Shown here: positions 10,401 through 62,500 of the stretch, one piece after another
Numbering within the stretch: the stretch's first letter is position 1
Layout: every line of letters starts with the position of its first letter
From: Syncephalis fuscata S228
Lineage: Eukaryota > Fungi > Zoopagomycota
Length of the DNA: 64,000 bases
Assembly (NCBI GenBank): GCA_025786725.1
Contig: JAHLTZ010000023.1
Span: 310,001-374,000 of the forward strand
Direction of reading: 5' to 3'
Notes under the pieces: model-generated
Seen by the model: only the letters and a program-made list of their open reading frames with translations
What the model was told of the DNA's origin: nothing
Databases searched by the model: none
Translations under genes and position numbers: made by a program

Positions 10401-10826
10401 CTCTGGCACTATCTGACCAAGCTCTATGTTATCATCGCCACTACCGCTATCGCCTAGGATAGCCTTCGCCGTCTCTGCCTCTCGCACACGCCGATTCGCT
10501 TGAATGCCTTTTTGTAGCTTTGTTCCTACAGCAGTTGGAGACGGCCTACTACTCGGTGAAGTTAGTCGATTCATATGGTGACAGTCATAAACGCCTCCAA
10601 TATCAGGTGACTCGGTCCGCGAGGCAGGCAGGCCGCAGAAGCAAAGTACGGTCTTGGATTTGAGCATAATGACATCGGGCGGTGCCTTTTGTTTGGAGGG
10701 TGCGCCATTGTTATGATTGTCGGACGATCGCAGCGCTGGACGCTTTCCAAACGACGTTCGGCGATTGTCGTGTTGTTGTTGACGGTGGTGGGCGCTAGAA
10801 TGTCCAGCATACTTATGCTGTTGCAT
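7452..10826 (-). CDS. Protein with two GRF-like zinc fingers, long low-complexity linker, coiled coil and C-terminal C3HC4 RING (putative E3 ligase)
   Basis: CFCGLPA...YDCH and PKCYCGDP...GRRYRFICRH...RCAWVLW in ORF 9732-10877. CRICYEQPISHVIIPCGHAVTCEKCA...CCVCRRAI at the end of ORF 7452-9380. Joining them needs an intron at about 9750-9708 and one frame break near 9500-9540; they could be two genes. Confidence 0.65.
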
Positions 10827-12603
10827 GACGAAAGGATACAGAATGTTGCTATTGTTATAAAAGGGAAAAACGAACAAATCTGAACAAAGAACAAATACGT
10901 AACGCTATTTTCAGCACCAAATACATAAGTAAATAGACTTGTCAGTGAGTGTGCGTGTGTGTGCGTTTGTGTATGGATGGTAAACGTGCTTATGAAATAT
11001 ATTGATTTCCATTACTTATTTCTTTTTTTAAAATTGCAAATGATGGCTCATAGAATATCATCTCAATGAAAGTGTGACGTGATTCGACGGCTATTCCTCT
11101 TATTGACGGTGCAACATCGTCATTATACTTGTTTAGTCCTCGCCAATCATTTTAACAATACAACATTAAGCTTTTCTGTATAGTAATAATAAATTGCTGG
11201 TATAAAGTGATTAGTAGTATTACCTATTGCTATTAATACTATAATTATAACTATCATTCTTATTATAATTATTTTATCTTAATTAATAAAATGATTTATA
11301 GATATCGATACTATTTTCTCTTTATTCATAAACTTGGTAGGCATTGCTAAAAAACATAAAGCTGTTGTTTACACATTGTACCATTGTGCCGTTTGGTTAT
11401 TGTTATTATTTAAATATGAATGTTCAATAAACGTCAACTTAACATAACAACAAACTTGTCAAGGCAGTTGTATAGAAACAAGTTAAATAGTGTCAACCTA
11501 TTTTCTATATCCCATATGATTTACAAGAATAGTACAATGGTTGTGAAAAATTGAATGCACTACTTGCCATACAGATTTCTTGGCATCTTGCCTTTATTTT
11601 TTAAATAGAATATAGCTAGGCTGATCTATTATAGCTATTATTAGAGCATAATGCGCAGTTTAAAAAGCAACATTTAATATACCTTTTTACCTATTTTCCT
11701 TATGGCCATTACCATTTTAATAAAGCAGCATGTATAGTTAAAATAGCAATACTGTTGTTTTATTAACCAAATCGCTGTAGATCAAAAATAGCTGAAAAAG
11801 CTGCAGTTACATGTACATGCTACAGTTACAATTCCGCTTATCGCTATATTGTTTGAGCTGCCGCAGAATCTTTATCGTAAACGGCAATAGCTCCCTTATT
11901 GTTTCAGATAGCACGTGGCCGTTTTGATCATCTACAGTAATATATGGCGTTATTGTCATATTTAGTGTGTAGCATTTTAAGCCATTTTGCTATTTCAGCA
12001 AATAATAAAAAAGCTTCGGAGTGTTCAATATAACTTTGCGGAGTGTTTTACATTTAATTTGCATATGGAAATGCACAAATCAAATAAGGTTGCTGTCAAT
12101 TTACATTTGCTATTTCGAACATTCCTTATGTTCGGAGGTAGAAACATTCCGGTAGTTTTTTTATTCCTTTGACAGCATAAATAAACGATATTTGCGGATG
12201 TATCTGCTATTCGCTACCTTTACGCAACGAACTCCTATGATTAAGACAATTTTTGCCGTTATCAAAATTTTGAACGATTTTCAGCTGTCTTGAGAAATTC
12301 TAAACAGCCTTTTTGCACCACTTATCCAGCAACATTTAGATCGACACTTTTCCCAAGTGTTACAACTACTCTGCTAAACGAAGCAACTATTGAAGAGCCG
12401 CCAATATTTAAATTCGCATCATTGCCACATTTGCTGCTGCTTATTCTATCTTCTCACCTTCCAAAGTGCTACCTCTTCTACTTCTACTCTATTCCCTTCT
12501 TTCAGTCCACCCTCCTCTTCTTGCTACCACCTTCATCGACTGATAAATAGCGCCCTGGTGGCGTTTGCATTTTTACACATCAAAAAGTTTTATATATATC
12601 ATC

Positions 12604-14949
12604 ATGCATTTGCCAAATAGCCTTGCTATAGCGGCCAAGTACTGCTTTTAATTAGTGCTGCTGTTGCATTACCCAATGGTGCCCCTGCGTGTGTGATTCG
12701 TCCGCAAAACATTGCAAAGATGGGCGGTCAAAGTCAGGATTTAGGTTATAGGTAAGTAATTGTGTAATATGTGTGCAACAAGTAATATTACTAACACTTA
12801 TGTAACAATAGACTTGTTCCAGAATCAATGACTTTTCAAGTTGGCCAACCATTGAAAATTCAAATAAAAAACCCGGCCTCCTACCGAGGTCTTTTGATGT
12901 ACGTACAAGGCGCCAATGATGAAAAAATCCGCAATGGCAACTTTGAAATCCCAGCTGGATTTAAATCTAACCGTCCAAACTGCGATGCCGATTTAACTGT
13001 TGGACCCAATGGTGTTATTACGCACTCATCAGCCGATCCTAAGCCAGGTGATGCAATCTTTACTTGGACTCCTGATCGTTGTGAAGATTCAGTGGTTCGT
13101 GCCGTAGTTGTGGGTGGTGCCAAGGATTTCTGGCAGGTTTTACCAGATGTTAAAATTACCTGTGCAAGTACCAGTTCCCCGGCAACTGATGTATATGAAA
13201 CAAATACCTATGGCGGTGCTGATGCTGAAAGTCAAACTCCATGCAATTGCACTACATCATCTGGCACTGATACTTACAGTAATACTGATTATGCTACTCC
13301 TGTTCCGGCTCCAGCTCCAACTGTTGCCGATACTACATACAATGATTCTGTACCATCAGGTGCCGAAACTTATGATGCCACTGCTTCAGTACCTGCTCCA
13401 GGGGTTATCCCTGCTCCAGCCCCAGTTGCAACTCAAACTCCATGCAATGACACTGTACCAGCAGGTGCCGAAACTTATGATGCTACTGCTCCAACCCCTG
13501 CTCCAGTCCCAGCTGCAACTCAAACTCCATGTAATGATACTGTACCATCAGGTGCCGAAACCTACAGTACCACCACTATGTTGCTCCAGTCCCAGCTCCA
13601 GTCCCAGCTGCGACTGAGACTCCATGTAATGATACTGTACCATCAGGTGCCGAAACCTACAGTACCACCGACTATGTTGCTCCAGTCCCAGCTCCAGTAA
13701 CTACTGAAGCACCATGCACTAGTTGCTATCAAGATACTATACCATCAGGTGCCGAAACCTACGATGCTACCAACTATGTTGCTCCAGTCCCAGCTGCGAC
13801 TGAGACTCCATGTAATGATACTGTACCATCAGGTGCCGAAACCTACAGTACCACCAACTATGTTGCTCCAGTCCCAGCTCCAGTCCCAGCTGCGACTGAA
13901 ACTCCATGTAATGATACTGTACCATCAGGTGCCAAACCTACAGTACCACCAACTATGTTGCTCCAGTCCCAGCTCCAGTCCCAGCTGCGACTGAAACTCC
14001 ATGTAATGATACTGTACCATCAGGTGCCGAAACCTACAGTACCACCAACTATGTTGCTCCAGTTCCAGCACCAGTAACTACTGAACACCTGCACAGTTGC
14101 TATCAAGATACTATACCATCAGGTGCCGAAACCTACGATGCTACCAACTATGTTGCTCCAGTCCCAGCACCAGTAACTACTGAAGCACCATGCACTAGTT
14201 GCTATCAAGATACTGTACCATCAGGTGCCGAAACCTACGATGCTACCAACTATGCTGCTCCAGCCCCTTACGTTCCGGCCCCAGTAACTCCATGTAATGA
14301 TACTGCGTCATCAGGTGCCGATACTTATGATGATACTGTTTCACTTCCAACTCCAGTTCCTGCTGATGCTGAAAGTGTTAGTGATACTAAGGAACCATGT
14401 GATTGCGAACAGTCAGCTCCTGTTACTAAAACAGCTATTATTGTGGTCCAATATACTGTGCCAGGCACTGGTGGCGAGCCATGTAACGACACTGCATCTT
14501 CGGACTCATCAGACATTGACACCTATGGTGATGACACTCCTTCCTTGCCCATGGTGCCAATAATCCCATCTGGACCATCGCATGGTGTTGATGTTTATGG
14601 CGATGAAGGCGAATCACCATGTGAGGACACCGATGTTAACTCACCGCAGCCCGTATCCGTTGAGTACGCTACACCGTATACACCTGGCATTGAAAGCGAC
14701 AGCTACGGCTCAGATGAATCCAACTATCCAAATCCTACTGTACTACCAGCCAATGATGCATATTCCTCTAACGAATATGCCTACGCGCCGGTTGGACAGC
14801 AAGGATCAACTAACATTTATCAAACCGTGCCAGCATCGCCGGCTGCAGTAGCTGCTGCGACAACGGCATCAGCACCAGTAGCTTCAACTGATTCATACCC
14901 TGCCTCGACTAATCCAAGTGCTGACTACAGCGTTAATGCAGGCTATTAA
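12604..14949 (+). CDS. Secreted Reeler-domain protein with long Pro/Thr/Ala/Cys tandem-repeat stalk
   Basis: Signal peptide MHLPNSLAIAA/VLLLISAAVA-LPNGAPAC (frame break at about 12637), intron 12752-12811, Reeler-like YRGLLMYVQ...GVITHSSADPK...FTWTP...VVRAVVV...FWQ, then repeats TPCNDTVPSGAETY. Confidence 0.75.
13340..14335 (+). repeat. Coding imperfect tandem repeats (core ccatgtaatgatactgtaccatcaggtgccgaaacctac, about 12 copies)
   Basis: Repeated core visible at 13527, 13622, 13808, 13904, 13999 etc., with a variant TTEAPCTSCYQDTIPSGAETY. Confidence 0.92.
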
Positions 14950-39964: not shown

Positions 39965-42900
39965 TTATGATGTTTCCATGGGTGTAAATATAGTATTTGT
40001 ATCTTCTTCCTTAACTGCTAGCTCAATAGTTGGAGAAGAAGGATCAATTGGTATTAGTGCGTCTGTAGATATATGATCTTCTTCGATTAAATCACCATCT
40101 TTTACCAATGGTAACTCTGCTGTAGACGCCAGTTCTGTCATCGATGGTAGCGTCGTTGATGCTTGAGATAAATCATCAAGTTTGGTTGTAGACTGTTGAC
40201 TATCGTAAAATGGCTGTGACCGTGCTGCAGTTGATGCAGTTGATAAATTACGTAAGAAATCTTCAACTCGTTCTAGATCCAATGCATCACCATCACTTTC
40301 TACAGCTGTAGTTAGTGTATCTAATTGTTGATCAACTAGCGTTAATGGAACACGTGAACATGCAGCAATTAGTCGACGGTAGCGCGCTTCTTTTTCCATA
40401 TCACGGCCCCGAGTTGACCATTGTTCTATTTGTTCCTTTAAAGCAGTATCCCTTGTCTCATACACGGCTAATTGTAACCGTAATTGTGCTAATGATAATG
40501 GCTGTGTAGGATTTAATAAAAGCTCTTCCTCCTCCTCCTCTTCTTCTTCATGGTCAGCAGTGTTATCTTTATTATATTCATTGCTCTTTTCTTTCTTTTC
40601 TAATCGCTCGTTTAACTGTACAGTTAACGTTTTAATACGTAATTCAAGCTGTGATAAATATCGACCACGAGCCCGTGATTGTTGTGCTTTTCCTCGAAGA
40701 TCAGCCAATTCATGGGTGGCCTCTCTTAATCGTTGTTGTGCTTCTAGAAGCTGTTCCTTTTTAAGCCGTAGTGCAGTATCAAAATCATTGTCCATATCAG
40801 TTACAAGCCGCTCCACCACTATTGTTACAATAAAGAGTAAGTAGATTGTTTGGTTTTAGATTAGGCTAATAGTTACCGGCCAATAGCTCTCGACTTCGAG
40901 CATCTCCGGCCGTTGTACGTGTACGTGTATCGGGTCGTTGTCGTTTACCGTAATCTTCACCGTCAATCTCCTTTCGTGACATCATGTTATACTATACATC
41001 AATAAACTAATAAATAAGCTGTCCATCATGTACAATAATATTACATACCAAATTGTTCATAACACCAAAATCATCGGGTCCTAGATCGTATCTATTGTGT
41101 AGATCACGTCGTGCTCCTGCTTCAATAAGCTGTTCCATCATCATGCGGCAACCGACACGGGCAGCTACACATAATGCTGTATCGCCATTGGTATCCTGGG
41201 CATTAAGCAATGTCGCTAGACCGCCCTCTCCTCCTACAACACTCTCTTCCTCTTCAATAAGATAGCTCAATAAACATGACATATAATAACGTGCGGCCAT
41301 GACGCGTCCTTTTATGCCAGCATGTAAGGCAATATGATGAAAGACAGTACGGTCACGCCCATCACGTAATAGAACCGATGGTCCTAGCAGTCGTAGTAGC
41401 TGAGGAAATATGTCACGTTCATAGTTATTGGTTACTAATACAGCCCGAATAAGAGCAGATTCGCCGGCATAGTTAACACGCATGACATCGGCACCACGAG
41501 CCAGTAATAAGCGCACAACTTGAAGACGAGCCAATGAAGCAGCCCAATGCAGTGCAGAATGTCCCTGATCATCAATAACAATATTGACATCGAGTACATC
41601 AAGTGAATCGTCATTCAATAAAACATCTGGCATATAATTCGGGTCGTCATTAAGAAATATCGACATAAGAGCGCTGCGTTGCTCGTCTTTACTGGCCATC
41701 GATGTTGTTACACGGCTGTGCATCAAGTTAGCCGATGTATTATTGTCATTGTCATCATCAATATGTTCATTATCTAGTTGATATATAATTAGTAGATATA
41801 GCATTGTTGGTAATATTTATTTACCAATAGCCGTGTGTGAACCAGTCAGTGCAGAGGCGGTTGTATCAAGTGTCGTAATGGCCGGTGTAAATGGCACAGG
41901 TGACAGTGGAGGGAAAGAGGGTCGAATAGGACGTGGTGATGAAAATGGAGACTGTAATTGTGCTTCATCGTCTAAATGATCAGACCGCTTTACTCTCTTC
42001 GCATTAGTTCCGTAGTAATAGCGATTTGTATTCAACTCAGTAGATTTAGATGATGTCATCGTATCACTAGATGAAAAGGCAAAAACTTCTTCATTTGTAC
42101 GTTTATATGACATTGCTGAACTATTAGGCTCGCGATCATTAATATTTTTAGTTAAACTTTCACTTTCTTCATCGTCGACCATTGTATCTTCGTATCTTCT
42201 CGTACGATAACCTGTTGAATCGATAGAGCGACTAAATAAAGAAGAAGAAGGATAATTATGTACATTGTTATTAAATGATGACGATGGTGACGATGACGAT
42301 AATGACAATTGATCTTGTAGTTGCATTTGATCTTTGTTAATTATATTTGAATATGTAGCTGTAGATCGTTGTTGTTGTGTCGGTAAATTACGTGGTGTAA
42401 AAGGCATAGATCTGCTACTTGTATTTATTTGTGTGGAAGTAGTAGGTGTGGAAGGTACCATAGTGGATGAATAGTGCGATGAACGAAGGATGGAAGAAGG
42501 CGGTGAAGATCGACGTGTCCTAGATGAATGTTGTTGATAGTCGGTACCATCAATAGAAGCACTAATAGACGAAAGTAAATTGGTATTACTATGACGGGTA
42601 GGTGTAGTAGCCGTGGTATTATCGGTATTAGTCATATGGTGCGTATTACGTGTTATGACTGATAGACCCGTCGATGGCGTATAATGCTGTGGTGTTGCCG
42701 ATTTATTTCGATGAAAAGCTGACATTGCTTGTTCTTTGGTCGGTGTTCTATCAACACTGCCCTCCTCTTGCGTTGGCTGATAGTCAAATAGTGGTCGTAG
42801 ATAGGATCAACGCCATATTGTTGGGCCAATTCAATGCCGCGATGGAATGGGACCCAAGTGCCCTGGTATTTGCCATAGCCTCCTTGAACCTTTTCATGCT

Positions 42901-43075
42901 CACCGGTCAGTACTTCGCGTTCAAGTATCTTTGTACGTCGACCTTTCTCAACGCCGGCTACTTTAAGTATCTGTGTAGCATTGAGGCAATGGTCCGATCG
43001 CCGTTTCATAACAGCGATTCCTCGGCACATCATCTCATACACCGGAATGCTCGAGTAAACTGCCGTATAAATCAT
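39965..43075 (-). CDS. APSES/KilA-N plus ankyrin G1/S transcription factor (Mbp1/Swi4/Res1/Res2 family)
   Basis: IYTAVYSSIPVYEM...LNATQILKVAG...HEKVQGGYGKYQGTWVP, DDQGHSALHWAASLA, AGESALIRAV, LLNAQDTNGDTAL, C-terminal YRRLIAACS. Frame break at about 42800. Confidence 0.95.
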
Positions 43076-43399
43076 GCTGTACTATATACGCCGTGCTTAT
43101 AAAATAAAAGTAACACGATGGTTTGGCTGAAAGCGTAGCATAGAGAGGTAGAGATGGATGTGGTGTGTGTATATATACGTAGTGAATCACAAGAAAGAGT
43201 TTAAAGATAATCACATGGACGCATGATTTTGGTCCAATATAAATTATGTAGATTATTACGGAATTGAGTATTCGTATTATTAATGTTACTATATTATGTA
43301 TGATCTAAAGTATTGTATTTATTGTTTAATAATTGTATTATAATGATCGTAGTAATAGTATCAAGTAAATGGAGTAAAGAAGCTGTATGGTTTTGGTTT

Positions 43400-43494
43400 T
43401 ACTTTGACTCTTACATTTGGAGTCCTCAAAGCAAATTTCGTTCCAATTAAAGTCATGCTGTTATGCATAACAAAACACAAGTATAGTGTTTTCA
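43400..43494 (-). ncRNA. Putative omegaRNA scaffold remnant (three hairpins) at the 3' end of the Fanzor remnant
   Basis: Minus strand reads aaaacac-tatactt-gtgtttt, gttatgc-ataaca-gcatgac, cttt-gag-gactc-caaatgtaa-gagtc-aaag. The position matches where Fanzor/TnpB omegaRNAs lie. Confidence 0.45.
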
Positions 43495-43975
43495 TTTGAT
43501 TACTTGAAATTCACGAGGCCGATCATTATTGTTGTTAGTCATGCGTAGAAAGATTGATTGAATATTAATAAAAGTCATTGATTGCGATTCCATATCGTTC
43601 CGCAGTTGTTGTTATTGTTACTACGTACAGTGTAATTTCTTTGCGTCTGAATGGTTTCTTCTATTTTTCAATCTTCTACTGTTGCATTTTGGGCGTATTT
43701 GCAATGTAAAATACTCGTCTATGGTGACAAAGAAGGTAGGACAACTAGCGTTTTTAATGTTCGCTATTCTCTTGAGCATTCTTGGTATCAACTTGGTAGG
43801 CGCAGATTATTTGCTGGCCATTGAAGAAACAAATGGCCTCCACCATATGCAATAGTGATAGGTTAAGTGTCTTCACCAAGAAGATCTTGTGGTGACATTT
43901 GTAACCAGAATATACGACATGTCATTGAGGTTGCTTGAACAGGTGTTGATGTATAACAAGAGAAATAAAGACTAG
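43492..43975 (-). pseudogene. Degenerate Fanzor (eukaryotic TnpB-like RNA-guided nuclease) C-terminal RuvC/Zn-ribbon remnant
   Basis: Frame-corrected: PITIAYGG/FVSSMASK*SAPTKLIPRMLKRIANIKNASCPTFFVTIDEYFTLQIRPKCNSRRLKN...NNCGTIWNRN/MTFINIQSIFLRMTNNNNDRPREFQVIK*, versus Fanzor1 consensus IAYG..F..SM....AP.K, VDEY.TSQ.C..C, C...WNRD..AA.NI, RP..F. Contains a stop and frameshifts. Confidence 0.8.
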
Positions 43976-44633
43976 AAATTAAATAATGTTTTATATTGAT
44001 GTTCAAATACGCATGCTATTTATATTGCTATATTTGATATTATCATATAATATATTAATGAATAAAACAACTAAAAAGAAGATAAACAATAAGATAGCAA
44101 TAAGAAAAAGACGGTGAAATGAGTAAATAAAAGATGTGGGTCAAAGTACAGTGGCTCCAGCTGAATAATACAAAATATACTCTACTAAAATATCTGGGGT
44201 TCCTTATATGTGCATAGAATGCTTTAGTGGTGCATTTCTAAAACAGCACCAATTATACTCGTTTGTTTTAAATTACAGGAAAAATATGGAAATCAGCTGG
44301 ATAATCATGGTGGCGGTGACAACGATGCTGATGATGATGATGATGATGCAAAGGGTGGCCATAATATGTTTCTTCCTTCCTTCCTTCCCTCCTTACCTCC
44401 GATAACGAAGACTTTCTTGATTTAGATCTAATCAAGATGAGATGGATTCAAATAAAGCAGCAAACACCCATTAGGGGTTTTTGTTTCGCCTATAAGTAAA
44501 TAGAACTAAACCGTTTAGTTTTACTTTTCTTGTTCTCGGCTTTTCTTCTTTGCTACCACTGCTACTATATGACCATAGCTGTTGTTGCTATTGCTGACTC
44601 GTTTATTGAACAACTACATTTTCTATTGACACG

Positions 44634-46133
<1,500 letters not shown>

Positions 46134-46697
46134 TGCTACTGACTTTTTTGCGTAAATCCGCTTTGTTCATTATGCGTGGAACGATCCAACAAAAAAGATA
46201 TATTCTGCTTTCGGCCTTTTCTTTCTTTCAACAATATACTATTACTATTCTATTTTATATAGAATAATAAATAAATTTTAATTTCAATAGTTTTAAATTC
46301 ATCTTCTTAAATATATAATGACTTGAGATTAATGTAACTATAGCAACAATTTTTATTTACCTTTGTTCGATATTAGTATGTAATAAATATTTTATTAATT
46401 AGAAATTTGCTTTAATTTAATTAGTTATTTATTTTGAGTTAAGCTCATATTGTCATGATAATGTGCCTAAAAATACAATATGCGATCGTATTCTCTGTTA
46501 ATATCGCATGCAAATAGTCACAAAGGCAATGTATTAAATAGCAACACCTAATTACTTTATAATTGCATTTTAATACTGCTACATGCTGTCATAGCATTTA
46601 CGTGATAATTTTACATTTAAATTTGTGAATTCATATTTTGTCGGCATTTTAATGCACATAAAAAATCGTACTTTTTGATGAGACCATGGCTATTAGA

Positions 46698-47749
46698 AAT
46701 ATAAATATTACATTTTTACGATGGTCGTATTACTACAGTTCCAATATTATAATCATATTGCTATAAATATGTAATTAAAAAATATACTGCGTGATTAATT
46801 AAATCTAATAAAACTATATGTAAACAGACAGTAATAATACCTGTATTGAATACCAATGTTAAACAATAACAACAAACAACTATTAAAAATATATAACCCG
46901 TAAACACGTTAACAGTAAGCATATGAATAACTATGCTAATTAATGCGCTGTATTGCTGCTAAAATACTACAAATAATTTATACAATATTATATATATATA
47001 ATATAAAATGATAGCTTTATTCTACATCATCAAAGCTAATTATCAGTTTTTAGTTTTTTTTATTTCTACTTAGTGCCAAACAAATTATTTAGTTTATTAT
47101 AGCTGAACTACTACTATTGTCCTAATAATTAGAAATGGCAACCGGTTGACTAAGCAACACATAGTATTGAATTTGTATTTAAGCGTTATATTAGTTCTGC
47201 AGTAATTTTTTACACTAGATACATACCCATGTATCTGTTTAATAACTTATAGCTCAGCCAAATAGAGATGATAAAACATTAGAATAGCTCACATTTAGTT
47301 GTTTCAACATATTTGTACAGTCCATTGCTTTAATAAACTAGAACAAAAGCTTAAATACAACTAGTAACTAAAGTAATAAACAATAACAATTATTGCAATG
47401 ATAATGATAATAGCTTTATTTTATAGTAAATGATGCTGTAATGATAGAGAATTATTAAGGGAAAACCTGGATATTATTTCCTTTACTATGTATTATAGGC
47501 TTTTTACTCGTGTAACAATATCGTATGGTTAATTATATTGACAGCTTTTTGGCAAGGATATTGAATTGTTATTAAGTGGCTGATACTATTTAAAAGTAGG
47601 CTGAGACATGTATTATTTGCTTGCTGGTTGCAGGTAAATAGTTTACGCGTATAAGTGTCACATTGTTATATACACACAATAACTAATTATAATCACTAAA
47701 TATGGAACAATGCATAATTAGAATGTTTATTTAATATACGCTAAATTAA
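46698..47749 (+). repeat. Left arm of 1052-bp inverted repeat
   Basis: Reverse complement of 51562-52613. Paired coordinates sum to 99311 at both ends (no net indel); one substitution seen near 47673. Confidence 0.97.
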
Positions 47750-48100
47750 TACTATAATTTTGTAACAATTAGTATACACAAGCCATTATTTAATTTAATT
47801 TTGCACTTAAGTTAACCAAGCACATTACTTATAATTAAACAATATTATGATTATCAACATTAAAAAGCAACTAACATTATAGACGCTGCCAAAATTACAA
47901 ATTGTTTGGTATTATTATTATTATATTTAATTAGAATAATAACAATATATAGTTGTTGAAATTCGCTAAACATCCGATTGTTTGTTTTGCTCCGAATATT
48001 TTAGATGTGTGCAAAAAACAGCCACGCGTTAAAGAATTACAACTAATAATAAAATTAGAAATCGGGAAACAGCTTGATTCACATACTAATAGTGATTAAT

Positions 48101-51041
48101 CTAGTCGTCGGTGCTTTCAGAATCGTCGCTGTAGTCATCTTTATCTTGACGATTGCCCTTATAATAGCTAGTTGCCGCCTTCTTGGCGCCTGAGCGTGGG
48201 TGCTTGGTGGCTTTGTTGCTGCTATAATAATTGCTACCACTAGTTAAATTGCCCTCGCCCTCATCCTTGTCGCCGTTATAGTCTTTGCCGTATTTGTTAC
48301 CATCATGGGATTTGCCACCATGTTTACCGTGATGGGCTGGTGCGTGATGTGGTCTGAAGTCTTTGTGGGCCATGTCACCAGAAAAATGACTGCCTAAAAC
48401 GCCAGAGCCGTACGATGGTCTGTAGGGAGCGTAAGGTTTGTGTCCAAACTTTTCAGATTCGAAATGTGGACCACCATGACCGTAAGGGCCAGGTCCAAAC
48501 TTTTCAGATTCGAAATGTGGACGGCCATGTTGGAAATTGCCATAATGGAAATCATTTTCATGAGGATAGTTCATTCCTTCGTGGTATGAGAGTACGCCGG
48601 AGTGATGATGGTTATTGGGGAAGTCGTGATGGTTCCAGATTTGATGAGGCGGATAGATTGGCGAACGTCCATCGCTAAAAACATCATTATGTGTATTTGG
48701 TACTATAGGCACGTTATTAGTTTGAGGAACATTAGTATTAGTCTCTGAAACTGGGAGCGCATCGGAATTTGTTAGCCTTGTACCCTCTACTGAAGGTAGT
48801 ACAACTGCAGCTGGCTTTGTTGCGACTCGAGTAGGTGCTACAACAGCTGGTTGAACCTTAGTGGGTACCACAATCACAGGTGTAGGCTTTGTAGCATCTG
48901 GTCCTGCTATATTAGTCGATACAGCAATTGGAGTTGGCGATTCAATCACTGGAGTAGCAGTCTCGACGGCAACGGCTGGATTTGGTGTTGACGTATTTTC
49001 GGGAATTTTTTGTATAGGAGTAGCGACAACTTCTTTTGGACGATTATCTAAAGTATCTTCAGGCTTTGTTGCGGCCGGTTCTGGAGTCATGAGTGGGTCT
49101 TCTGCTAAAATTGGATTTCTTGCAGGAGTCGACTCAGATGCGGGTATGGACTGTGGCATAATTGGAGTTACCATCGGATCAGTTGGAGTAGGTTGCTTTT
49201 GTGATTGAAATGGTGGAGTCATTGGCTGTTGAGGAACTTCTTCAGGCTGTTGCTGAACAGGTGGAGTCATTGGCTGCTGAGAAACTTCTTCAGGCTGTGG
49301 CCGAAATGGTGGAGTCATCGGCTGTTGAGGAACTTCTTCAGGCTGTTGCTGAACAGGTGGAGTCATTGGCTGCTGAGGAACTTCTTCAGGCTGTGGCCGA
49401 AATGGTGGAGTCATTGGCTGTTGAGGAACTTCTTCAGGCTGTTGCTGAACAGGTGGAGCCATTGGCTGTTGAGGAACTTCTTCAGGCTTTGGCCGAAATG
49501 GTGGAGTCATCGGCTGTTGAGGAACTTCTTCAGGCTGTTGCTGAACAGGTGGAGTCATTGGCTGCTGAGGAACTTCTTCAGGCTGTGGCCGAAATGGTGG
49601 AGTCATCGGCTGTTGAGGAACTTCTTCAGGCTGTTGCTGAACAGGTGGAGCCATTGGCTGTTGAGGAACTTCTTCAGGCTGTGGCCGAAATGGTGGAGTC
49701 ATCGGCTGCTGAGGAACTTCTTCAGGCTGTTGCTGAACAGGTGGAGTCATTGGCTGTTGAGGAACTTCTTCAGGCTGTGGCCGAAATGGTGGAGTCATTG
49801 GCTGCTGAGGAACTTCTTCAGGCTGTTGCTGAACAGGTGGCGTCGTTTGTTCTGAAGGAGTTTCCACATTACTTGGTTGATCAGGCGTTGAAATTAATTC
49901 AACTGGTGGACTTGAAGTGACAGCCGATGATGGCCCATTATTCACTTTGAGTGGAGCAGTTGTCTCGGGTACCACTGGTGTTGCCTCAGGTGCCGATGGT
50001 GTTGCCTCAGGTACCACTGGTGTTGCCTCAGGTACCACTGGTGTCGCTTCAGGCGCCGATGGTGTTGCCTCAGGAGCGGGAGTAGTCATTGGAGCTTCGG
50101 TTTCTGGGAATGGAGTTTCGTCGATAGTTTCTTCACCTAGTACACCTGACTTGCGCGGATACGTGGATGAGCCATAGTCGTCGTAGCTACGATAGTAACC
50201 TTTGGAGTAATAGTCGTGCTTATGTGGCTTCTGCTCGTATCCTGAATCGACATCATCATATGGCAAATCGTTGTTTTCTTCGGGCAATGGCCTAAGCAAA
50301 ATGCAATTAACAAAACCTACAAATATTTAATTATGATATACATACTGTGTATCTGTTTGGGTTTTTGATGAAGCGGTAGGTGCCTTTGCTTTTTTGACTA
50401 AGTTTTGTCAGTACATGTCAAGTGTATTCTAATTATGCTTACTTACTTTTAAGTAATATAGGTTCTTGCGACAGATCACGAGCTGGTCTATAATAGAAAT
50501 TAGATGCTTGATACAAAAATTAAACAATTACTTGCCGATCATCTTTATTGTTACTCATCGGCTCTGAACTTTGAACATCAACTGGATTGTCACTTTGTTC
50601 AGATGGAGCATTGTTTTGTTTAGATGGAGTATTGTTTTGTTCAGATGGGACATCGTTTTGATTAAATGACTGGTCTTGAACATTTTGTGGTTCATCATCT
50701 GGCTGTTGTTGGAAGACATCATGTATATTTCTGTCTATTCCTCCTTCAGTAAGCAACGGATCTGTCAAACGCTCAAGGCCAAGGGACTTAACAAGGTCAG
50801 GAACTAGACCATCTTCCCGCTTGTTTTCAGTTACAGTGCGAGTAAATGTAAATGGTCTGTTAGGCTTGTTCGAAAGAGCCTGGATCTTGATTGGCCAGTT
50901 TCTAGTCTCTTTATTGGTCCTAATGATGCCATCTCGCAAAGGAGAGCCCATTGCGCCTGGCATCGTAGTAACTGCAATCGATGCTAGTCCAGCTATAGCT
51001 AGCAAAGCGGCCGAAAAGGTCACCATATTGTGAGCGACCAT
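48101..51041 (-). CDS. Secreted Pro/Gln/Glu-rich tandem-repeat protein with His/Gly/Tyr-rich tail (probable cell-wall, spore-wall or adhesin type), 4 exons
   Basis: Signal peptide MVAHNMVTFSAALLAIAGLASIA from 51041, two micro-exons at about 50488-50447 and 50397-50346, long last exon about 50291-48101. Confidence 0.85.
49203..49850 (-). repeat. 45-bp coding tandem repeat, about 14 units, alternating two variants (90-bp higher-order unit)
   Basis: PPVQQQPEEVPQQPMT and PPFRPQPEEVPQQPMT strictly alternate. Confidence 0.97.
49965..50080 (-). repeat. 21-bp coding repeat (PEATPSA / PEATPVV) about x5
   Basis: ggtgttgcctcagg recurs every 21 bp. Confidence 0.9.
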
Positions 51042-51561
51042 GCTGTATATCGGTGTAGCTGTCTTTTTTTGTTCACTGCTATTGCATACAATAAAAGCGT
51101 GGCTAATATTAAATTCAACTGTGTTTAACGAGCTTGAAAATATAATAGTCAGATAGTTTGTTTGGATGAAGGGCACAGAAGTGAAGCACAATAACGCGCA
51201 ATTATTAAAAACTTTATTACCATGCCTTTATTTCTTTTATTTTTTGCATGCCGCACGACATGGCAGAGAAAGGCTGAAGGAGAAAGTAAAATGGTCATGT
51301 TAAGGAGGTAAGGAGCAAGGGGTTTTGTGTATCCTGGTTAATTAATACCTGACTAGATCGCCCCTGACGTACATGCAAATATGCTTTCCCCTTACATAAT
51401 CTAAGGAAATTAGCCCCTTGTGATTGCATTAAATTTTATGAATCAATTAACTGCTTTTAAATTATTTTTAATTAATTATTGCAGTTTTGGATTGTTATTT
51501 TAAACTCTATGAATAAATCAATATTATTTTTAATTCATTATTATTGAAATATTTAATTTAT

Positions 51562-52613
51562 TTAATTTAGCGTATATTAAATAAACATTCTAATTATGCA
51601 TTGTTCCATATTTAGTGATTATAATTAGTTATTGTGTATATATAACAATGTGACACTTATACGCGTAAACTATTTACCTGCAACCAGCAAGCAAATAATA
51701 CATGTCTCAGCCTACTTTTAAATAGTATCAGCCACTTAATAACAATTCAATATCCTTGCCAAAAAGCTGTCAATATAATTAACCATACGATATTGTTACA
51801 CGAGTAAAAAGCCTATAATACATAGTAAAGGAAATAATATCCAGGTTTTCCCTTAATAATTCTCTATCATTACAGCATCATTTACTATAAAATAAAGCTA
51901 TTATCATTATCATTGCAATAATTGTTATTGTTTATTACTTTAGTTACTAGTTGTATTTAAGCTTTTGTTCTAGTTTATTAAAGCAATGGACTGTACAAAT
52001 ATGTTGAAACAACTAAATGTGAGCTATTCTAATGTTTTATCATCTCTATTTGGCTGAGCTATAAGTTATTAAACAGATACATGGGTATGTATCTAGTGTA
52101 AAAAATTACTGCAGAACTAATATAACGCTTAAATACAAATTCAATACTATGTGTTGCTTAGTCAACCGGTTGCCATTTCTAATTATTAGGACAATAGTAG
52201 TAGTTCAGCTATAATAAACTAAATAATTTGTTTGGCACTAAGTAGAAATAAAAAAAACTAAAAACTGATAATTAGCTTTGATGATGTAGAATAAAGCTAT
52301 CATTTTATATTATATATATATAATATTGTATAAATTATTTGTAGTATTTTAGCAGCAATACAGCGCATTAATTAGCATAGTTATTCATATGCTTACTGTT
52401 AACGTGTTTACGGGTTATATATTTTTAATAGTTGTTTGTTGTTATTGTTTAACATTGGTATTCAATACAGGTATTATTACTGTCTGTTTACATATAGTTT
52501 TATTAGATTTAATTAATCACGCAGTATATTTTTTAATTACATATTTATAGCAATATGATTATAATATTGGAACTGTAGTAATACGACCATCGTAAAAATG
52601 TAATATTTATATT
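51562..52613 (-). repeat. Right arm of 1052-bp inverted repeat
   Basis: Reverse complement of 46698-47749. Confidence 0.97.
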
Positions 52614-53781
52614 ACATTTCTACAATGATCTTATGTATTCAGAATAACAAATAATTTCATTTTGCAATATTCATAAATATTTTGCATCAATGATAAAATC
52701 TTATGCATTATAAACTCAACACTACTAATTGTACACTTTCTACTTTATATTTGTTCTATTCTGTATAATTTATCTTGCAGTAGTCGTGTACTATCCATAA
52801 CTATTGCTCGTTTGTCTCTAATTCAATTACCAATAAACTTTGATCAACTTTGTTATTGGGCATATATACGGATAAAACAAGTGATATGGGTATGCATAAA
52901 CTTATTACTTTATTAAAAAGCGTACTGAGCTAGTTATTTATGACTAATGATTGCTGGACTAGTTAATGCCAAATAAGTTGGTATGGAGCTGTAGAAAGTT
53001 TAAAAAATAAAAGAATGTAAGAATTAATATTGCAACACTGTGAGAATGTAACAGCATGGTGATATTGAAATTAAATATATTTATACAGAAGAAGAAGAAT
53101 AAATTATATAATAAATTTGATGACCAATATAGCTTATCACTTGTCCCATGTTCAATAAATAGAATGTTATTAATTTAGTCATTTACACTCAAATTACATT
53201 ATGCTTTAATTATTTAATGCTAATTACCACTTGGACACATGTTTAATAGTTTTTTTTAATGTATTGCTAGGCTAATAATAAAAGTATTATCATTAAATAC
53301 TATATTTATTGGGGCAAAATTTATATAACAATTTATTTTAATAATAGATCTTAATGCCATAAGGCTAAAAAGCAATGTTTAATTGCTATAAAGTGTAGCG
53401 AAACAAATTGTAATTTAATGCAAACAAATAATATTTCAATAATATGCTCAGTCAATTTTTAAACATTCCGTAATATTGTGATCGTATTGACTAGTAAATA
53501 AATTGTTGGTATTTCACAAAGTTGAAATGAAAATGAAATGTGAAAATATAAAAACAAATGCTTAGTATAGCATTTAGAAATAGTTAAAAGACCCACAGTG
53601 GTTTAAAGAGTCGTACTAAAGGAACGACGTGTAATGGGTTGTTGTATGGTGCTAAAATAAAGTGTGTAGGTTGAATACACGGTATAAAAATCAAACTGAA
53701 AGAAACGTTGTATGTACAAATGATTACATCGTTTACCGGCTTCGTGACAAATTGCCTATCGTTTTAGTTGATTAGAGCCGA

Positions 53782-55626
53782 TTAGGCAATCACACGAGTG
53801 GCAACGAGACCGGTTGCCGTTGTGGGACTGGCCAGTGTGATGGGCAGTACAGGTCCTGATGGCGATGACATGCCGTTGTAGTCGCATTTAATTTCAGTTG
53901 TATTTGAAAATGTAAAGTCATTGCTATTTATATTGCCGTGCGAATGTTCTGAAATGGTGAATGTATCAAAAGAGCGCGGTAATTCGACATAGGCCAATGA
54001 ATCTGCTGCAAGTGAAATACGTTTGGTCATTATATCATTGGAGAATAGCTTTTCTCCACGCGATAATGCCTTTTGTCGTCGACGCTCAGCGCGACGTTCA
54101 TGCGTACGTTCATGCTGGGCTAAATTATCTCGACGTGCAAAGCGTCGTGCACAACCAGCCCATGAGCACGAATAAGGACGTTCCTGTGTATGTACACGCT
54201 GGTGACGTCGTACGTGTTCGGCACGATTAAAGCGACGCTGACAGATTGGACAGACATGAGCTGAGGACGGAGAAATACCACCAGCAATGCTGGCACGATA
54301 CATAGGAGCTCCTGAAATTGCTGCCACGGTTGAGTTACGACGAACGACATTGGTAGACGATAAATTGGCCGCTAACGATAGTGCAGGCGATGAAGCATGT
54401 CGCGCTAGTGCACGTATTGTACTAGGCGGCGATGACGATGACGATGGCGATGATTGAGGTACTTCATGCGATGCTACTATGCTAGACGGACTGGTCAAAG
54501 CGTATCCTTCGGCAAAAAGAGATGCGTTGGCATTATGCGCGTGTAATCCTATCGAAGGATCAACTGCACTGGTGAATGAAGTGTATGTCTGTGACGTTAC
54601 CGAGCTAGCTGAGAAATCGGAGCCAGGACTACTTGGCGACCATGTAGAGTCAGCGTGATGTTCTCTGTTTAATAAATACTTTATGCTTGGTAGACGTGAT
54701 GCAGATTCTGAAGGCGTTAGTGGTGGAGTGCCATCAAATAGCTGGCTATGCGCAATATGACTGCCATTGAACGACGTCGTTGACTCGTCTAGTCCTCCAT
54801 TGTTTTCAGATCCAAACTCACTATTTGGCGTCTCATCGCATGTCTCTAGCAGCGAAGAGAGACGCATTCGTTGGTACTGGCCAAGTGCCGGTGCACTGCC
54901 ACGACGAGCACCTGTCCAGCCGCGTGGTGGAAATGTATTCCATCCGGCTGATGGAGCCAGTCCTGCAGACTGTGGACTAGATCCCACTGCGTCCAATGTG
55001 TCTACATCGGTATTTGCAGACGATTGCAATTCATCAATCGTCGATGTAGACTCCATCAAACTTGGCTGTTGCATAGAAAGAAACGATGAATCGACAAAGG
55101 CAAAGTGGGGTCCTGGATGAGCCTCTGGTGAGCTAGCAGGTGTGGTATTGGTGTTAGTAATAACATTTGTGGCCGATGATACCATCAACGACGTATTACT
55201 ATGAAGGGATAGATTGGCTCTTGAGTTCAAATAAGGCATTGAATGGGAACGCGATAAATTCTGTGTTTCTGGGATATTACTAAGGCCAGTAATGCTATTA
55301 TTATTGCTGCTATTGCTACTGCCGATGCTGCTATTCACGCTAGGCAGCCAAGCAAGCCCCTTTAATTGCGAAACCGAAGGAGGGGAAGGCAGTGACCCTG
55401 CGTCGTATTGAACAAACGGATCCTGTCCAAATGAAGAGCCAGACACCCTACGTTGACGTAGAAGTGTATCAGCCGAGGTCAGCAGTGTGCTGCCTGCATC
55501 TGCAGTAAAGCATTCTTTAAGCGATGGTAGTCGTTGGTCACCTGTGAAACAAAAAAAGGCGCATAATAGACACTGCTGGTTAATGCCCGTTCAAAACTTC
55601 ACGCCCAGTACGCCTTGTTCAAACAT
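53782..55626 (-). CDS. Two-finger C2H2 transcription factor (Nrg1/Msn2/Usv1-like); 5' exon uncertain
   Basis: HVCPICQRRFNRAEHVRRHQRVHTQERPYSCSWAGCARRFARRDNLAQHERTH; LPSLKE and LPSIKYLL motifs; RRGS/RRNS PKA-type sites. Frame is open to the acceptor at 55541. ATG 55626 would need a GC-AG intron. Confidence 0.85.
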
Positions 55627-57359
55627 CTTTAGCCTATAACTTGTTTTTGCGATGGAGCGTGCGTATTCCAGCATCGATTACACACTGTCATAGCCTTAAT
55701 ATCAAAAAATAACCACTGAGACAGCCAAAAAACGGTCATGAGGTACTTGTATGTGTGCAAGGGGTGTTTCAAAGCTATAGTTCGCTTTGCCTATATTCCT
55801 ATTGCTCTCCTTGGAACAAGCACGCTGTGTCATCAGAACATGTAAGTTCTGTGGGTGTGTGGGTGAATAACATAATTCAAACTCCGACACCGACTACATA
55901 TGTTTTACTGCCCCATTTTGACTGTGGCCATTTGACCATACTAAATTTTGATTGGCAACAAAGGTCGTCCAATCATTAAATCATCATGAGTCCATATGGT
56001 TACTCTTTTACTACACAATGGCCATTGTGTGTTTGTTATTATTTATAATAGCATCAATATCACCATTAATAAAATATAAATAATAATACTAATAATGACC
56101 ATACTAGTTATTGTTAAAATGACACAACACAATTGGGACAGCTTTTTTAAAAGCTGGCTCCTTCAAACTAAGGGCATGACTGCACGCGTAGACTCATACC
56201 ATGCAACCACCACCTGATATAACTCTGTACATGATACTGCAAAGCCGTATAGTCTATTCTATCAATGGGAATAGCAACTTACCAGACATGGCGTGTATAG
56301 TTTATGGTTATGGTGCACAAGCGGAAGTTACGTGTACTATTTAGTATTAATAGCCGGCGTGTGCTGTACGTTGAATCCTGGGATAAATATGATAGTACAA
56401 GTGGATGTTTACTGCGGATAATAACAAACAACAAGTCAGTACTGAAACAAATGACGAGAAACAACAAAATCAAAGAATACTAAAGAGTAATACAAGCTGA
56501 CCATAAACAGGTGCAAGAAACGAGGCGGTGGAACCGATAGAAAGAAAATGAAGCAAGCAATAGTATAGATAGATATAGCGCACGCGTGCTATGTGCAATT
56601 TAGTAGCGCTGACAAAACCACTTGCAAAACCAAAAGAGTAGTTGCTGTTAATATATTCAATATTGTATACTAAACTTGCTAACGTCTAGACGAGAGCAAG
56701 ACTAAAGTACCGAAGGAATATCAGCAAAAGTAGAGGCAACAACAGTAGCAATAGTAGTTACAACAACGGCGACCACGACGACGACGACGACAACAAACGT
56801 AAAAGTGTAGACGACGTAATACGTGAATGTGCAACGAAATGAAAGAACAACAAAAGCAAACAGCTTCAAAGTACCAGCCTATGCGAATGACAAGCAATGA
56901 AGGACAACAGCTATTGTAATAAAAAAGAGCTTTAAAATGAATATTCACGCAAACGACTGAAGCGAGTGGTGAAAGTGAATAGAGGAAAGAAAACGCGCTG
57001 ATTCGAAAAATGGCTACGTGGATGTGTGGTTTATTATTATTATGTTTAAACAGCAACGGTATATCGCACTTTAAGGAGAGAGAATAGCAGATGGATTGGA
57101 GATAGGTGACAAGGGGGAGGAAGGAGGAAGCACAGCAGTAGCATCAACATCAGCATCAGCAGCAGCAGCAGCAGCAGAGGAAAAAAGAATAGGAGAGTGA
57201 GGAGAGGAGAGGAAGGCTATAACAAACCTGTACTCTTTTTCTTGCGTGCACGCGTGCTTGTACTCAATCAATTTCTTTGAATGGTTTATTGACTTTTTCT
57301 GCGTCGTAATGGATGCTCATCTGAGTAAGTGTACAAAAGGAGTACTACGTATTTCGTAT

Positions 57360-57390
<31 letters not shown>

Positions 57391-59548
57391 TTAAAAGGGA
57401 GAAGTACAGATATAGTAAAATTGCAAGTACAAGAGAAATAGCTTAGGTGCTATAAAAAAGGGGACAGAACGTGGTGCGGGGAATCTTTGTCAGGCAATAT
57501 TACCATGAAATAGCTGCAGTTGTCATGAATTAGCGAAAAGGGAGGATGCAGATATGTCACATTCAAGGTCCTAAGTAGTATTGCCGAGCGGGAATAATAA
57601 CAATAAATGATGCTATTTGATAAAGACTAGGATCAACATAAGTCTTTATTATTCTTTCCGAGTCGTGATAGATTTAGCAGAGTTTTAGCCAACCGATACC
57701 GACAATCTATGCCTAAGAAGGAGATACAAGGATGGCGGTTAGAAACAAAACAGCGTTGAATAGGCTAGAACCGAAAAATGTCGTCGGAGAGATGGTTGCG
57801 CATGTAAGTATCGACATGGATCGACAAGCATCGATAAATACACAAGGAGGCTGTGTAAAAAAGACCCTGATATAATTCATAGATAAAATTGCACTGTATA
57901 ACACTGTTATCTCTATTCGTCATTCATTCATCAAACGGTAATGGTCAATTAATTACTGCAAGCCTACTCTCAGCTGACCAGGTTGGAGTGACACGAAGCT
58001 GCCCTATATTGGAGGCAATGCTTCATGATCAATTAATTAATGTCTTGATTGGCTATGACATTGCCCCATCGATAAAACAGCAATGCTGTAATAGCAATGA
58101 ACGCAGTAATCCATGGCCGCAATGGCCATAACAAGGCGATAAGAAACATGGCTAGACATCAGGTGACGGAGGACTCATTTCCTTTTCTCTGACGTAGAAA
58201 CATGTGTGTTTTAGGAGTAAAACCACGTAGAAAACGCCGTTTGTTATTTCAAAATATAAACTGTTCTTACTGTACTAATACAAAGTTATTTAATATTACA
58301 GCAATGGCTTTTAACAGCTCATTTATATATTTAATAACACATCATTTAATAAAATTATAATTTAATAGCTTTAAAATGAACATTATTATTCTGATCACGC
58401 TAATCATGTTTATTGTTTTGATTATACCTCATCGAGTTATGATAAGAAAATCTTGAAACGGCCATGCGCACATGCGTATACAGCTGCAAGTGATGGCCAG
58501 CCAAAGCAGTGAAGATTGAAATGCAGCTACAGTTAGAATGCACTGCTGCCATATAATAGCCACTTCTTTGTACTACAAACTGATAATTATGACGTTTTTA
58601 CATCATTTAATAGCATCCCTTGTATTCTTCCTATCAATCGTCGATTTTTTAAATCTACCATCATTGTTTAGTATTGATAACAACAATGAATGGACTAATG
58701 TTCATTGTGCAGATAAACGCCAAGAAAAAGCAGTATTTTTGAAAAAGAAAGGGGACCCATACAATGACATGCATGCCGATATAGGTGATGTACGCATGGA
58801 TGGGCGTTTAAAACAGCGCAAGAGAAAGCGCGGCAATAAACATGTTCTATACCGCGATAAACGGTGCTGTTGCAAAGGCAAGAGCTGCAAGTAAACGCAT
58901 TGCACGCTTTATATGGAATGCAACTCTTATTATGGCAGTCGAAATCAAGTAGCCACCCATTATATTACTATTGTTACTACTATTATTGTAACTATTGTTG
59001 GAATCTAGACAACGGCTCAACCGCGACCAAGGTGGGGCTTAATTAAACATTAATCTGCAGTGCAATAATAGATTGCATACCAAGCCTTTGTACAATAATG
59101 GTAAAAAGATTAGCCGAATGCCTATTTTGATTGTCATAGCTACATTTTATTCATTATTTATCTGTAAAGCACCACCAATAACGGCCACAACAATACAGGG
59201 TTAGTAATGATAGATGATAAGTATCCATGCCACGGCTGCGGCAGTCACCCACGTGATACAGCCATGGCTTTACTTGGGTCTGTATGGTTGTATATTTATG
59301 TGTAACACGGACTGGCTTAAAACGGTAATTCCTTGAATGCACAGACAGTAAAAGGCCGATGGCTACACAAAATGGCAAAGAACTTTTGGTGGCAACATTT
59401 ACTGATTTTAACTATTCTATTGCCATTTCTTTTATTGTTAACTAATTTTATTATTATTAAAATAATTATTTTTATTGCTGATTTTATAATTACTATTGTT
59501 ACTAATAGTTAACATGAATAAAATACACTAACAATAGACCAATATCAT

Positions 59549-62500
59549 TTAAATAAAATGCCCTCGATTTTCACGTCGAGGTGCAGTCACAGTTGTAGAC
59601 GAGCGTTTAAGTACTTCCTCGCTAATGGTGATAACAAGATTGACAGCACCTTCGCGCGACATGTCACCTTGAATCATTAGATCGAGGCCAGCACCCGTTC
59701 CCTCCATTGACGCTTTGCCGTCAATCGTTAAACTATTGGCGGCTTCAGTCTTACCGACTGTCCACCGCTGTAACGACATACGACCGGCTGTCGTCATACC
59801 GACCATGTTGATTAGTTCAAATAGCTGTTGCGTAGATGACTTGTCATTCGGACATGACAAACGATCTGATTTGCGCAAACTACCATCATTACCGTCGAGT
59901 AATTTCTCATTACCCACTAAAGCAAATGAGTCATCTACACCGTGTGATCTATCAACAAAACGTGCAAAGAATTCACGTTCTTCTTTAGCCCCTTCAGCTC
60001 GCCATGCCACCAGCAAATGTGGCTGACAAGCAAGCATTTGGCCATCCGGCCAGGCCAGCGCGTAAAGTAATAAACCAACACTGGCAGCCGGTGCCGATAC
60101 TGATGCTGCAGTAAATGAAAAATTGGCACTAGCTCGGCCACCATTACCGCGGATCATTGCTGTAGGCTGTGTTGTACAGCTACCAACGATAGTTGTACAC
60201 TCAATTCGCTTTAATAAAAGATAAGGATGGCGATTTTCAATCATTACATAGACAGGATCGGGTAGTGCATCTAATAAAACAGCAATTATAGTTATTAGTC
60301 TTAATTGGTTATTTATAATTATATATAACCTACCATTAATAATCTCACTAAATGGTAATGGAAATTGTAATTCATCAACTCGCTATTAAAACAATATTAA
60401 AACAATACGAATATTAATATAAATATTTTGTTAGATCACTTATATAACGTTATAAATAAGCTTACTTCGTCAAGTAATAATTCTTTAAGTGCTATACGTA
60501 GTTTAGCATTGGAGCCTGAGGTTAAACTGGCTTGTATCTCAATTTGTCGATTATCGTCAATGGCAATTTCCATATCGACTGCACCATAACAAGAGAAACG
60601 ACTCATGGCTTCAAGTCCAGAAAGTATATCATTCCACAAACGATAATCGGTATCGCTAGGCATTTGTCGTTCGGAATTTAATGCAACAATCTCCAGCAAC
60701 AAACGACTAGGCGCATTCTTTGACATCTGCCAACCGACAAGCAAAAGGATCGGTGATGACATAGGCGTGCCATCTGTATAACTAAGCCGATAAGCAAGAA
60801 TACCCTCAAGTCGAGTATTAGCTTCGGCAGTAGTGGCATCGTAGATTCGAGTGGCCGATGAGAATATGCCCCAGTCTTCGTTGGTATTGTGTTGGTCAAG
60901 TTGTTCACTCGGTGAATGTGAACAAATACCTTCAATAGCCCGACAGCCTACCAATTGTAGTGTAATATTAGATAGATTGTTTTTAATAGCAAATATTAAA
61001 TTCAATTGTTCTTTAATATCGGTCGGTATAGCTTCGCTTGACTGATTTGGGCTGCTATTTCCATCATCTACTACAGCTGGCGACGTATTGCCCCGTTCTA
61101 CAGTTGGCCGTACAACTGCTGAATTAAATGATAGGTTGGCAATTTTATTATAAACCGTAGGTGAAATAATCTCGGAAGTTGTACGGTTTGGCGGTTCAGG
61201 TAATGGACGTGAAGTTTGCCGGCTATACTTCATATTGGGCGATAGTGTCTGTCGTTTTAATTTTGGTGACTGATGTGTACCATTGCTAGTATTGCTACTG
61301 CCGCTGCTACCAGCATTACTGCTGTTGCTAGCATTGCTACTATTGCTGGCTGTGCTAGTCACCAAGGCCGACAGTGAGTTTCTTATACATGGTAATGATG
61401 ATTCGGAATTGTTGTTTGATAGTGGCAATATACGACTACTTGGTGCCTGAGCTCGTAACGAAGGATTTTGTTCGAAATAAATACTTTTTTCCTCAATTGG
61501 AGAAATAATACGATGTGGATCTATTGAGTGATTTGAAAAGTCATTGACTGGCTCCTGTGTGATATTCATTGTCATATTGGCTGATGTTGTCGATTCAGGT
61601 CGTGGTCGTTGTATAATTGGATCTTCAGGATCAATAAGCTTCATACTCAAATATGGTGGACCTGGCTCTTCCTCGCGCGATAATCGATTAACCAATGCAA
61701 CACGTAGATTAGTCACTTTAAGTCGCTGACGAACATGGCCACCAGGGCCAATAAGACGTGCATCGGCTAAACGACAAAAGAACTTTTCACGTCCAGCTTG
61801 TGTAGCAAATCGCTCGTGCATATCGAATGTCACTTGAACAGCATTGGCAAAGTAAGAACGACCACCAGTCAACGATACACGCCAACCAATGGTCAAATAT
61901 GTGTTGGTGGCAACCTGCCGCTCTCTATTTTCAACTGCTGACATAATAAATCCTGATGCCACACCATTGCTGGCGACGGATGAGGTAAATTCACAGATTA
62001 ATTGGCCACCAAGATCAAGACTATCTTTAGGTACTGTTATAGGTTCGCCTTGTACAATATAGGCATGTGGATAAAGTAGACGAATACCTGGATGCAAGTT
62101 ATGCATATCAACTACAATACTTGCAATAGTCGGCGATCGTACGGTTCGTGGTACTTGTTTGTTCACCGGTAATGAAGTGGATCGAGGTGGATGCCAATAA
62201 ATTGGATTAGGCGCAGTTATAGGCACATCAGGTACAGGCGGTGGTGTAGTTGATGTTGGCACATGATCAAATTCATCATCAGGCGCTAATAAATTAATAT
62301 TAATAAATAAACAACTTTAAATAGCAAAGTAGTTACCAAGTGACGGATCTACCGTCTCACCACTAGCCGTACTCATATTGTCTTTGGCATGTCGACCACC
62401 CTATGATTATTATAACAGTTATTATTACTATTGCAATAGTATTCGGTATTTAATGTCTATTTACCTGAACTTCATTTGAAAAGCATACCATTGCATTCAT

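Follow-up and report, generated by a model that had tools for sequence, protein, structure and literature searches.

A single-gene segment between 1052-bp inverted repeats in Syncephalis fuscata and a second contig carrying its core in the opposite orientation

A stretch of 64,000 nucleotides from the fungus Syncephalis fuscata S228 (assembly GCA_025786725.1, contig JAHLTZ010000023.1, positions 310,001 to 374,000; called here the window, to which coordinates refer unless stated) contains one gene for a predicted secreted protein, enclosed by two non-coding arms of 1052 bp that are almost perfect inverted copies of each other. The new observation is that a second contig of the same assembly, C155, holds the same cassette with its core flipped. 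The explanation that we favour, with appreciable reserve, is that this single-gene segment lies within a 1052-bp inverted duplication, that recombination between the arms flipped the core recently and that the flip is a neutral by-product of the repeat. Reading the segment as invertible is plausible, its support being at the level of the assembly. The parts of the cassette are as follows.

46698 to 47749, plus strand: left arm, 1052 nt, 25.5% G+C, non-coding, defined by a repeat search and by base-by-base comparison with 51562-52613.
47750 to 51561, no strand assigned: unique core of 3812 bp, flipped relative to the right flank in C155.
51562 to 52613, minus strand: right arm, identical to the full arm of C155 at positions 4478-5529 of that contig.
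47673, no strand assigned: the only arm-to-arm difference, C in the left arm and the equivalent of T in the right arm.

The repeat search returned a single inverted pair, with arms of 1052 nt and 3812 nt between them. When the arms were compared base by base, one mismatch (47673) and no indels were found, in agreement with a preliminary description of this DNA that had reported reverse-complementary arms of equal length with one substitution and no net indel. Only the left arm of C146, the main contig, carries the C at 47673, the other base being present in the right arm and in both arms of C155. No second long inverted repeat accompanies the 46698-52613 pair in the 64-kb window. Similarity stops sharply at all four borders, and when the outer and inner flanks are aligned, the scores lie among those of shuffled controls. 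A decayed extension of the repeat past its borders was considered on account of a by-eye match of 14 of 17 positions at the right outer border, and was rejected since the alignments lie within the shuffled range. The G+C content of the arms is similar to that of other intergenic DNA of the window. Scans of the arms covered 46100-46975, 47014-52297 and 51562-52297; no open reading frame (ORF) of at least 30 amino acids overlaps the right arm in the scanned part 51562-52297, and the scanned parts of the arms gave no Rfam or tRNA match. These results agree with the earlier portrayal of the arms as non-coding and AT-rich.

C155 is 13,921 bp long. Its positions 4478-13921 correspond to window 51562-61016 in the forward direction, and include the right arm and the flank that carries a C2H2 zinc-finger gene, while its positions 1-5529 correspond to the reverse complement of window 46698-52130. 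The core of C155 is flipped relative to the C2H2 flank and the switch falls exactly at the arm borders. Outside the tandem array of the gene, 16 substitutions separate C155 from the window, transitions accounting for 14 of them, along with a 3-bp AGA microsatellite indel. In the array itself C155 is longer by 96 bp, which amounts to one more unit of 32 amino acids (window 49062-49985 compared with L011 2287-3021). The gene is intact in both contigs, the open frames of its last exon measuring 741 amino acids in C146 and 773 in C155, and two of the four coding substitutions alter a residue, namely T8A in the signal peptide and V154A. Eight single-base homopolymer deletions were also detected in C155, all of them in its last 1.5 kb, which suggests a long-read assembly whose contig ends were incompletely polished. 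Because C155 combines a flipped core with substitutions of its own and the 96-bp block, both orientations of the segment are probably represented in the DNA that was sequenced. The pattern of substitutions and deletions appears to fit a multi-read, long-read contig of a distinct variant, with coverage thinning at one end, and not a contig derived from the same molecules as C146. Neither a second copy of the left flank (41000-46697) nor a second copy of the sequence past 61016 was found in the assembly, and a structural difference is for this reason the simplest explanation for this stretch having been assembled twice.

How far C155 can be trusted has to be weighed against several observations that count against a real inversion. 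The contig begins inside the far arm, at arm position 484, and does not reach the junction between the flipped core and the homocitrate-synthase flank. Many leftover contigs of 13-27 kb are present in the assembly (among C14, C53-C61, C106, C143-C160 and C294), and leftover contigs such as C155 could be paralogous copies or graph artefacts; C155 may also be an amplification chimera formed at the inverted repeats. Two of the three list neighbours of C155 consist of transposon-rich sequence, while in the third, C156, an alternative join runs across a repeat of 4.2 kb and about 100% identity, so that alternative-join contigs are not unique to this locus. It should be mentioned that the contigs of the assembly are ordered by length read as text. 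The 4.2-kb repeat forms an inverted pair in C319 (5-4174 and 25402-29694) with a 21-kb spacer, has further members in C156, C249, C326, C343 and C265, and stands beside different neighbours in several small contigs. It is itself another candidate for recombinational isomers or for a very recent segmental duplication.

These observations can be assembled into an explanation in which the inverted duplication is static and exists in one orientation only, C155 being either a spurious join within an arm or an in vitro chimera produced by template switching. Such an origin would agree with a contig that starts inside an arm and holds no sequence absent from C146, with the abundance of leftover contigs of about read length and with the alternative join in C156. 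It accords poorly, however, with a flip located exactly at the arm borders in a contig whose consensus is clean across the arm and for several kilobases on each side. The transition-biased substitutions of C155 and its additional 96-bp unit are likewise against it, since a contig with these features was not built from the consensus molecules. Moreover, the assembly would normally have merged a colinear stretch of 8.4 kb at 99.9% identity with the main contig, had structure not kept the reads apart. The position of the flip, the clean consensus and the failure to collapse favour a real difference, and we consider the static explanation unlikely, if still a serious contender. Three origins of C155 can thus be envisaged: another haplotype or nuclear type, a paralogous duplication of very recent date, or an artefact of the assembly or the library. 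Either of the first two would mean that the core was truly inverted between the arms, and a real flipped arrangement appears fairly likely to us.

Regarding the age of the arms, their near-identity had been taken to imply either a very recent duplication or ongoing homogenisation by recombination. The divergence of the two assembled copies outside the arms is about 1.3 substitutions per kb. Between the arms, one difference in 1052 nt was counted in C146 and none in the 569 nt of the far arm that C155 includes. Since the identity of the arms is no tighter than the divergence of the copies (0-1 per 1052 compared with about 1.3 per kb), a duplication dating from about the time at which the two copies diverged explains it equally well; duplication suffices, and ongoing homogenisation is possible but is not required. 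The arm borders are the same in both copies, which indicates that the arm was duplicated before they diverged; one inversion or more must have followed the divergence if C155 is real.

In the explanation that we favour, an essentially perfect inverted duplication of ordinary AT-rich intergenic DNA would bound a chromosomal segment with a single gene, and homologous recombination between the arms would have inverted the 3.8-kb core at least once recently. Both orientations would be present in the sequenced material, one in the main contig, which is of the 1.4-Mb class, and the other in the 13.9-kb contig, which would correspond to another haplotype, another type of nucleus or a paralogous copy of very recent origin. 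On this view the repeat would give rise to the inversion passively, and expression is most likely unaffected, since the arms keep the surroundings of the gene identical for about 1.5 kb on each side. The earlier proposal of a candidate invertible cassette is upheld as far as structure is concerned, the inverted repeat being real and unique and a flipped core having been assembled in C155; its suggestion of a switch function is not.

The core carries one intron-containing gene of about 2.9 kb on the minus strand, predicted to encode a secreted Pro/Gln-repeat protein, and no other credible ORF was found in the core. The ATG is at 51041, 520 bp from the right arm, and the stop codon is at 48101-48103, 351 bp from the left arm; these distances match the earlier account of exactly one such gene in a 3.8-kb core, with about 520 bp upstream and 350 bp downstream. 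The features of the gene and the two neighbouring genes are listed below.

50532 to 51041, minus strand: exon 1, encoding a typical signal peptide and an N-terminal module conserved in one metagenome protein.
50292 to 50531, minus strand: short-intron stretch with two or three introns and small exons, allowing many frame-keeping GT-AG paths.
48101 to 50291, minus strand: large last exon of 729 codons and a stop, repeat-rich, no Pfam family.
49062 to 49985, minus strand: tandem array with a 48-bp period and a higher-order unit of 96 bp (32 amino acids), extended by 96 bp in the C155 copy.
45525 to 46133, plus strand: left neighbour, last exon of a homocitrate synthase gene (HCS_D2, 3.4e-40; HMGL-like, 2.7e-25), 3' end facing the cassette.
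53782 to 55446, minus strand: right neighbour, C2H2 zinc-finger ORF (zf-C2H2, 1.4e-09), 3' end facing the cassette.

Both neighbours had been named beforehand as a homocitrate synthase and a C2H2 gene, and both were recovered by Pfam (HCS_D2 and zf-C2H2). In the short-intron stretch, one GT-AG path with introns of 49, 49 and 50 nt would join exon 1 in frame to the large exon. The last exon encodes 20% proline, with 7-residue PEATP repeats, a Pro/Gln array of 16- and 32-residue units, a Thr/Pro/Val-rich region and a His/Gly-rich tail. The array with its 48-bp period is a coding minisatellite that is polymorphic between the two assembled copies.

Relatives of the protein were sought with the exons taken separately, and not with a joined spliced model. 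For the large exon, the word search returned no relative, the atlas was blank and no Pfam family matched. An exhaustive search with exon 1 returned three proteins, P0001, P0002 and a third that is a low-complexity match only. P0001 (204 amino acids) is 100% identical over residues 1-169 and is a model of this same gene that reads another frame within 50292-50531 and ends before the 2.2-kb last exon. On our reading of its residues P0001 would start with a GC-AG first intron; given the in-frame GT-AG path to the large exon, this public model is probably truncated. P0002, from the JGI metagenome 3300047677, is a predicted secreted protein of 163 amino acids that is 53% identical over residues 58-115. 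It has in common with exon 1 a similar signal peptide and a module of about 58 residues (FxFTRTV...DGLVP...GL...DP.LT.GG.D...DVFQQQ), and its contig measures 915 bp and offers no gene context. The N-terminal module has at least one relative, since the search with exon 1 returned P0002; no further relative was found in a metagenome scan with the alignment of exon 1 and P0002, and no record of the exon-1 ORF or of P0001 was found in independent assemblies.

The arrangement of the gene and its neighbours bears directly on whether the inversion could act as an expression switch, as the preliminary description had supposed in suggesting an undescribed phase-variation system. In either orientation the gene keeps 520 + 1052 bp upstream and 351 + 1052 bp downstream, which confirms the caveat, raised in the same description, that the proximal promoter and an arm travel with the gene. 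The homocitrate synthase gene (plus strand) and the C2H2 gene (minus strand) are both convergent on the cassette, with their 3' ends inward. With inverted arms and the 3' ends of both neighbours outside them, the two orientations are nearly equivalent in cis, and this speaks against on/off switching. The core ORFs and Pfam revealed neither a recombinase or transposase nor a known recombination site. Judged from the sequence, an expression switch seems unlikely, and the phase-variation proposal is not supported.

One could nonetheless suppose a programmed flip-flop cassette whose orientation is switched often enough to be of use, position effects originating outside the arms making expression of the secreted protein depend on orientation. 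In its favour, both orientations have been assembled, and the enclosed gene encodes a fast-evolving, secreted repeat protein in a mycoparasitic fungus. We hold this to be very improbable, as no recombinase or known site was found in the core, about 1.5 kb of sequence in cis on each side is the same whichever way the core points, and the flanks are equivalent, each presenting the 3' end of one of two convergent housekeeping-type genes. In addition, the two orientations are linked to different substitutions, a linkage that would fit two stable forms, such as two haplotypes, better than rapid switching. A broader conjecture is that the orientations interconvert among the nuclei of one coenocytic mycelium and that this is one of many such cassettes, together forming genome-wide recombinational isomers; in the present cassette they would vary how a secreted host-interaction protein is expressed or how its repeats evolve. 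We give this conjecture little credence.

The cassette had also been put forward as a foldback or Pack-type element, a DNA transposon that would have picked up a host gene between long terminal inverted repeats. To this possibility the copy number of the arm is directly relevant, and a search of the arm against the 29.4-Mb assembly, a check proposed in the preliminary description, located the full-length arm twice in C146, one and a half times in C155 and nowhere else. The arm could have been a high-copy dispersed element; what was found is that the whole arm is unique to the locus and that about 330 bp of it is dispersed.

46782 to 47109 (arm positions 85-412), no strand assigned, mirrored at 52202-52529: old fragment of a dispersed short repeat in the arm, detected by the genome search.

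This part of the arm has 36 partial matches elsewhere in the genome at 69-83% identity, and members of the dispersed short repeat family have about 400-590 bp in common with one another at 89-95% identity. The arm is, on these alignments, best described as holding an old fragment of a dispersed repeat while being no element itself. Another dispersed repeat, of about 750 bp, lies at window 43389-44160, and the genome contains at least 594 candidate copies of it, which are 79-86% identical.

Long, sharp-ended terminal inverted repeats around a single cargo gene are what a transposon of this kind would display. Its other hallmarks are missing. The outer ends carry no target-site duplication of any usual length, the flanks ...GGCTATTAGA and ACATTTCTAC... 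being devoid of a direct repeat of 2-9 bp, and apart from this locus and C155 the 29 Mb contain no further copy of the whole arm. In the scanned parts of the left arm no tandem or internal sub-repeats, sub-terminal ones included, were detected beyond chance-level repeats of 15-16 nt. No paralogue or donor copy of the core gene exists elsewhere in its own genome. Furthermore, Pfam returned no family, whether of transposases, of recombinases or of any other kind, for exon 1 or for the large last exon, in line with the earlier remark that the cassette lacks a transposase, a recombinase and an obvious target-site duplication. Together, target-site duplication, copy number and arm structure speak against the foldback or Pack-type proposal, and we regard a transposon origin as highly improbable. 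A centromere with inverted repeats was also considered and rejected, the core being filled by an intact gene of about 2.9 kb and not gene-free.

The closest documented case is the flip/flop region of Saccharomyces chromosome XIV, in which a 24-kb segment with 15 genes lies between 4-kb inverted repeats and occurs in both orientations (Salzberg et al. 2022, PMC9731477). Its inversion proceeds by recurrent homologous recombination, with no dedicated recombinase and no known switch function, its arms are sporulation genes, and the polymorphism has been documented across strains and species by polymerase chain reaction and assemblies (PMC9731477). The two cases have in common a unique segment between near-identical inverted repeats, no recombinase, no switch shown and, probably, the occurrence of two orientations; they differ in that the arms described here are of 1 kb and non-coding, that a single gene is enclosed and that the evidence consists of two contigs of one assembly. 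In the mating-type flip-flop of Ogataea polymorpha and Komagataella phaffii, inverted repeats of about 2 kb support an inducible switching that shifts two different MAT loci in or out of a silencing region by a centromere or telomere (PMC6692504; bioRxiv 10.1101/2025.09.09.675088). The likeness, if the inversion inferred here is real, is an inversion by inverted-repeat recombination in a fungal chromosome, whereas the Syncephalis cassette has one central gene, symmetric surroundings and no sign of a silencing neighbourhood. Foldback and Pack-type transposons resemble the cassette in their long inverted termini around a cargo, and differ from it since the cassette is single-copy and has no target-site duplication, no arm sub-repeats and no donor gene. 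More generally, long identical inverted repeats recombine into orientation isomers that have no specific function, as in polymorphic inversions of animals and in plastid genomes, and the isomers of organelles are equimolar within cells. Isomers arising from inverted repeats have also been described for the mitochondrial genome of Babesia (PMC3546061). These animal inversions and organelle isomers concern other genomes and other scales.

At present, the cassette gives no pointer to a new regulatory mechanism. If C155 is real, it would document a compact, repeat-driven inversion in an early-diverging and poorly studied fungus, with arms of 1 kb, a single gene and two orientations in one culture. 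It would also call for caution among annotators of this genome, since small leftover contigs may encode alternative isomers and not contamination. Were this true, the nuclei or haplotypes of the sequenced strain would differ structurally.

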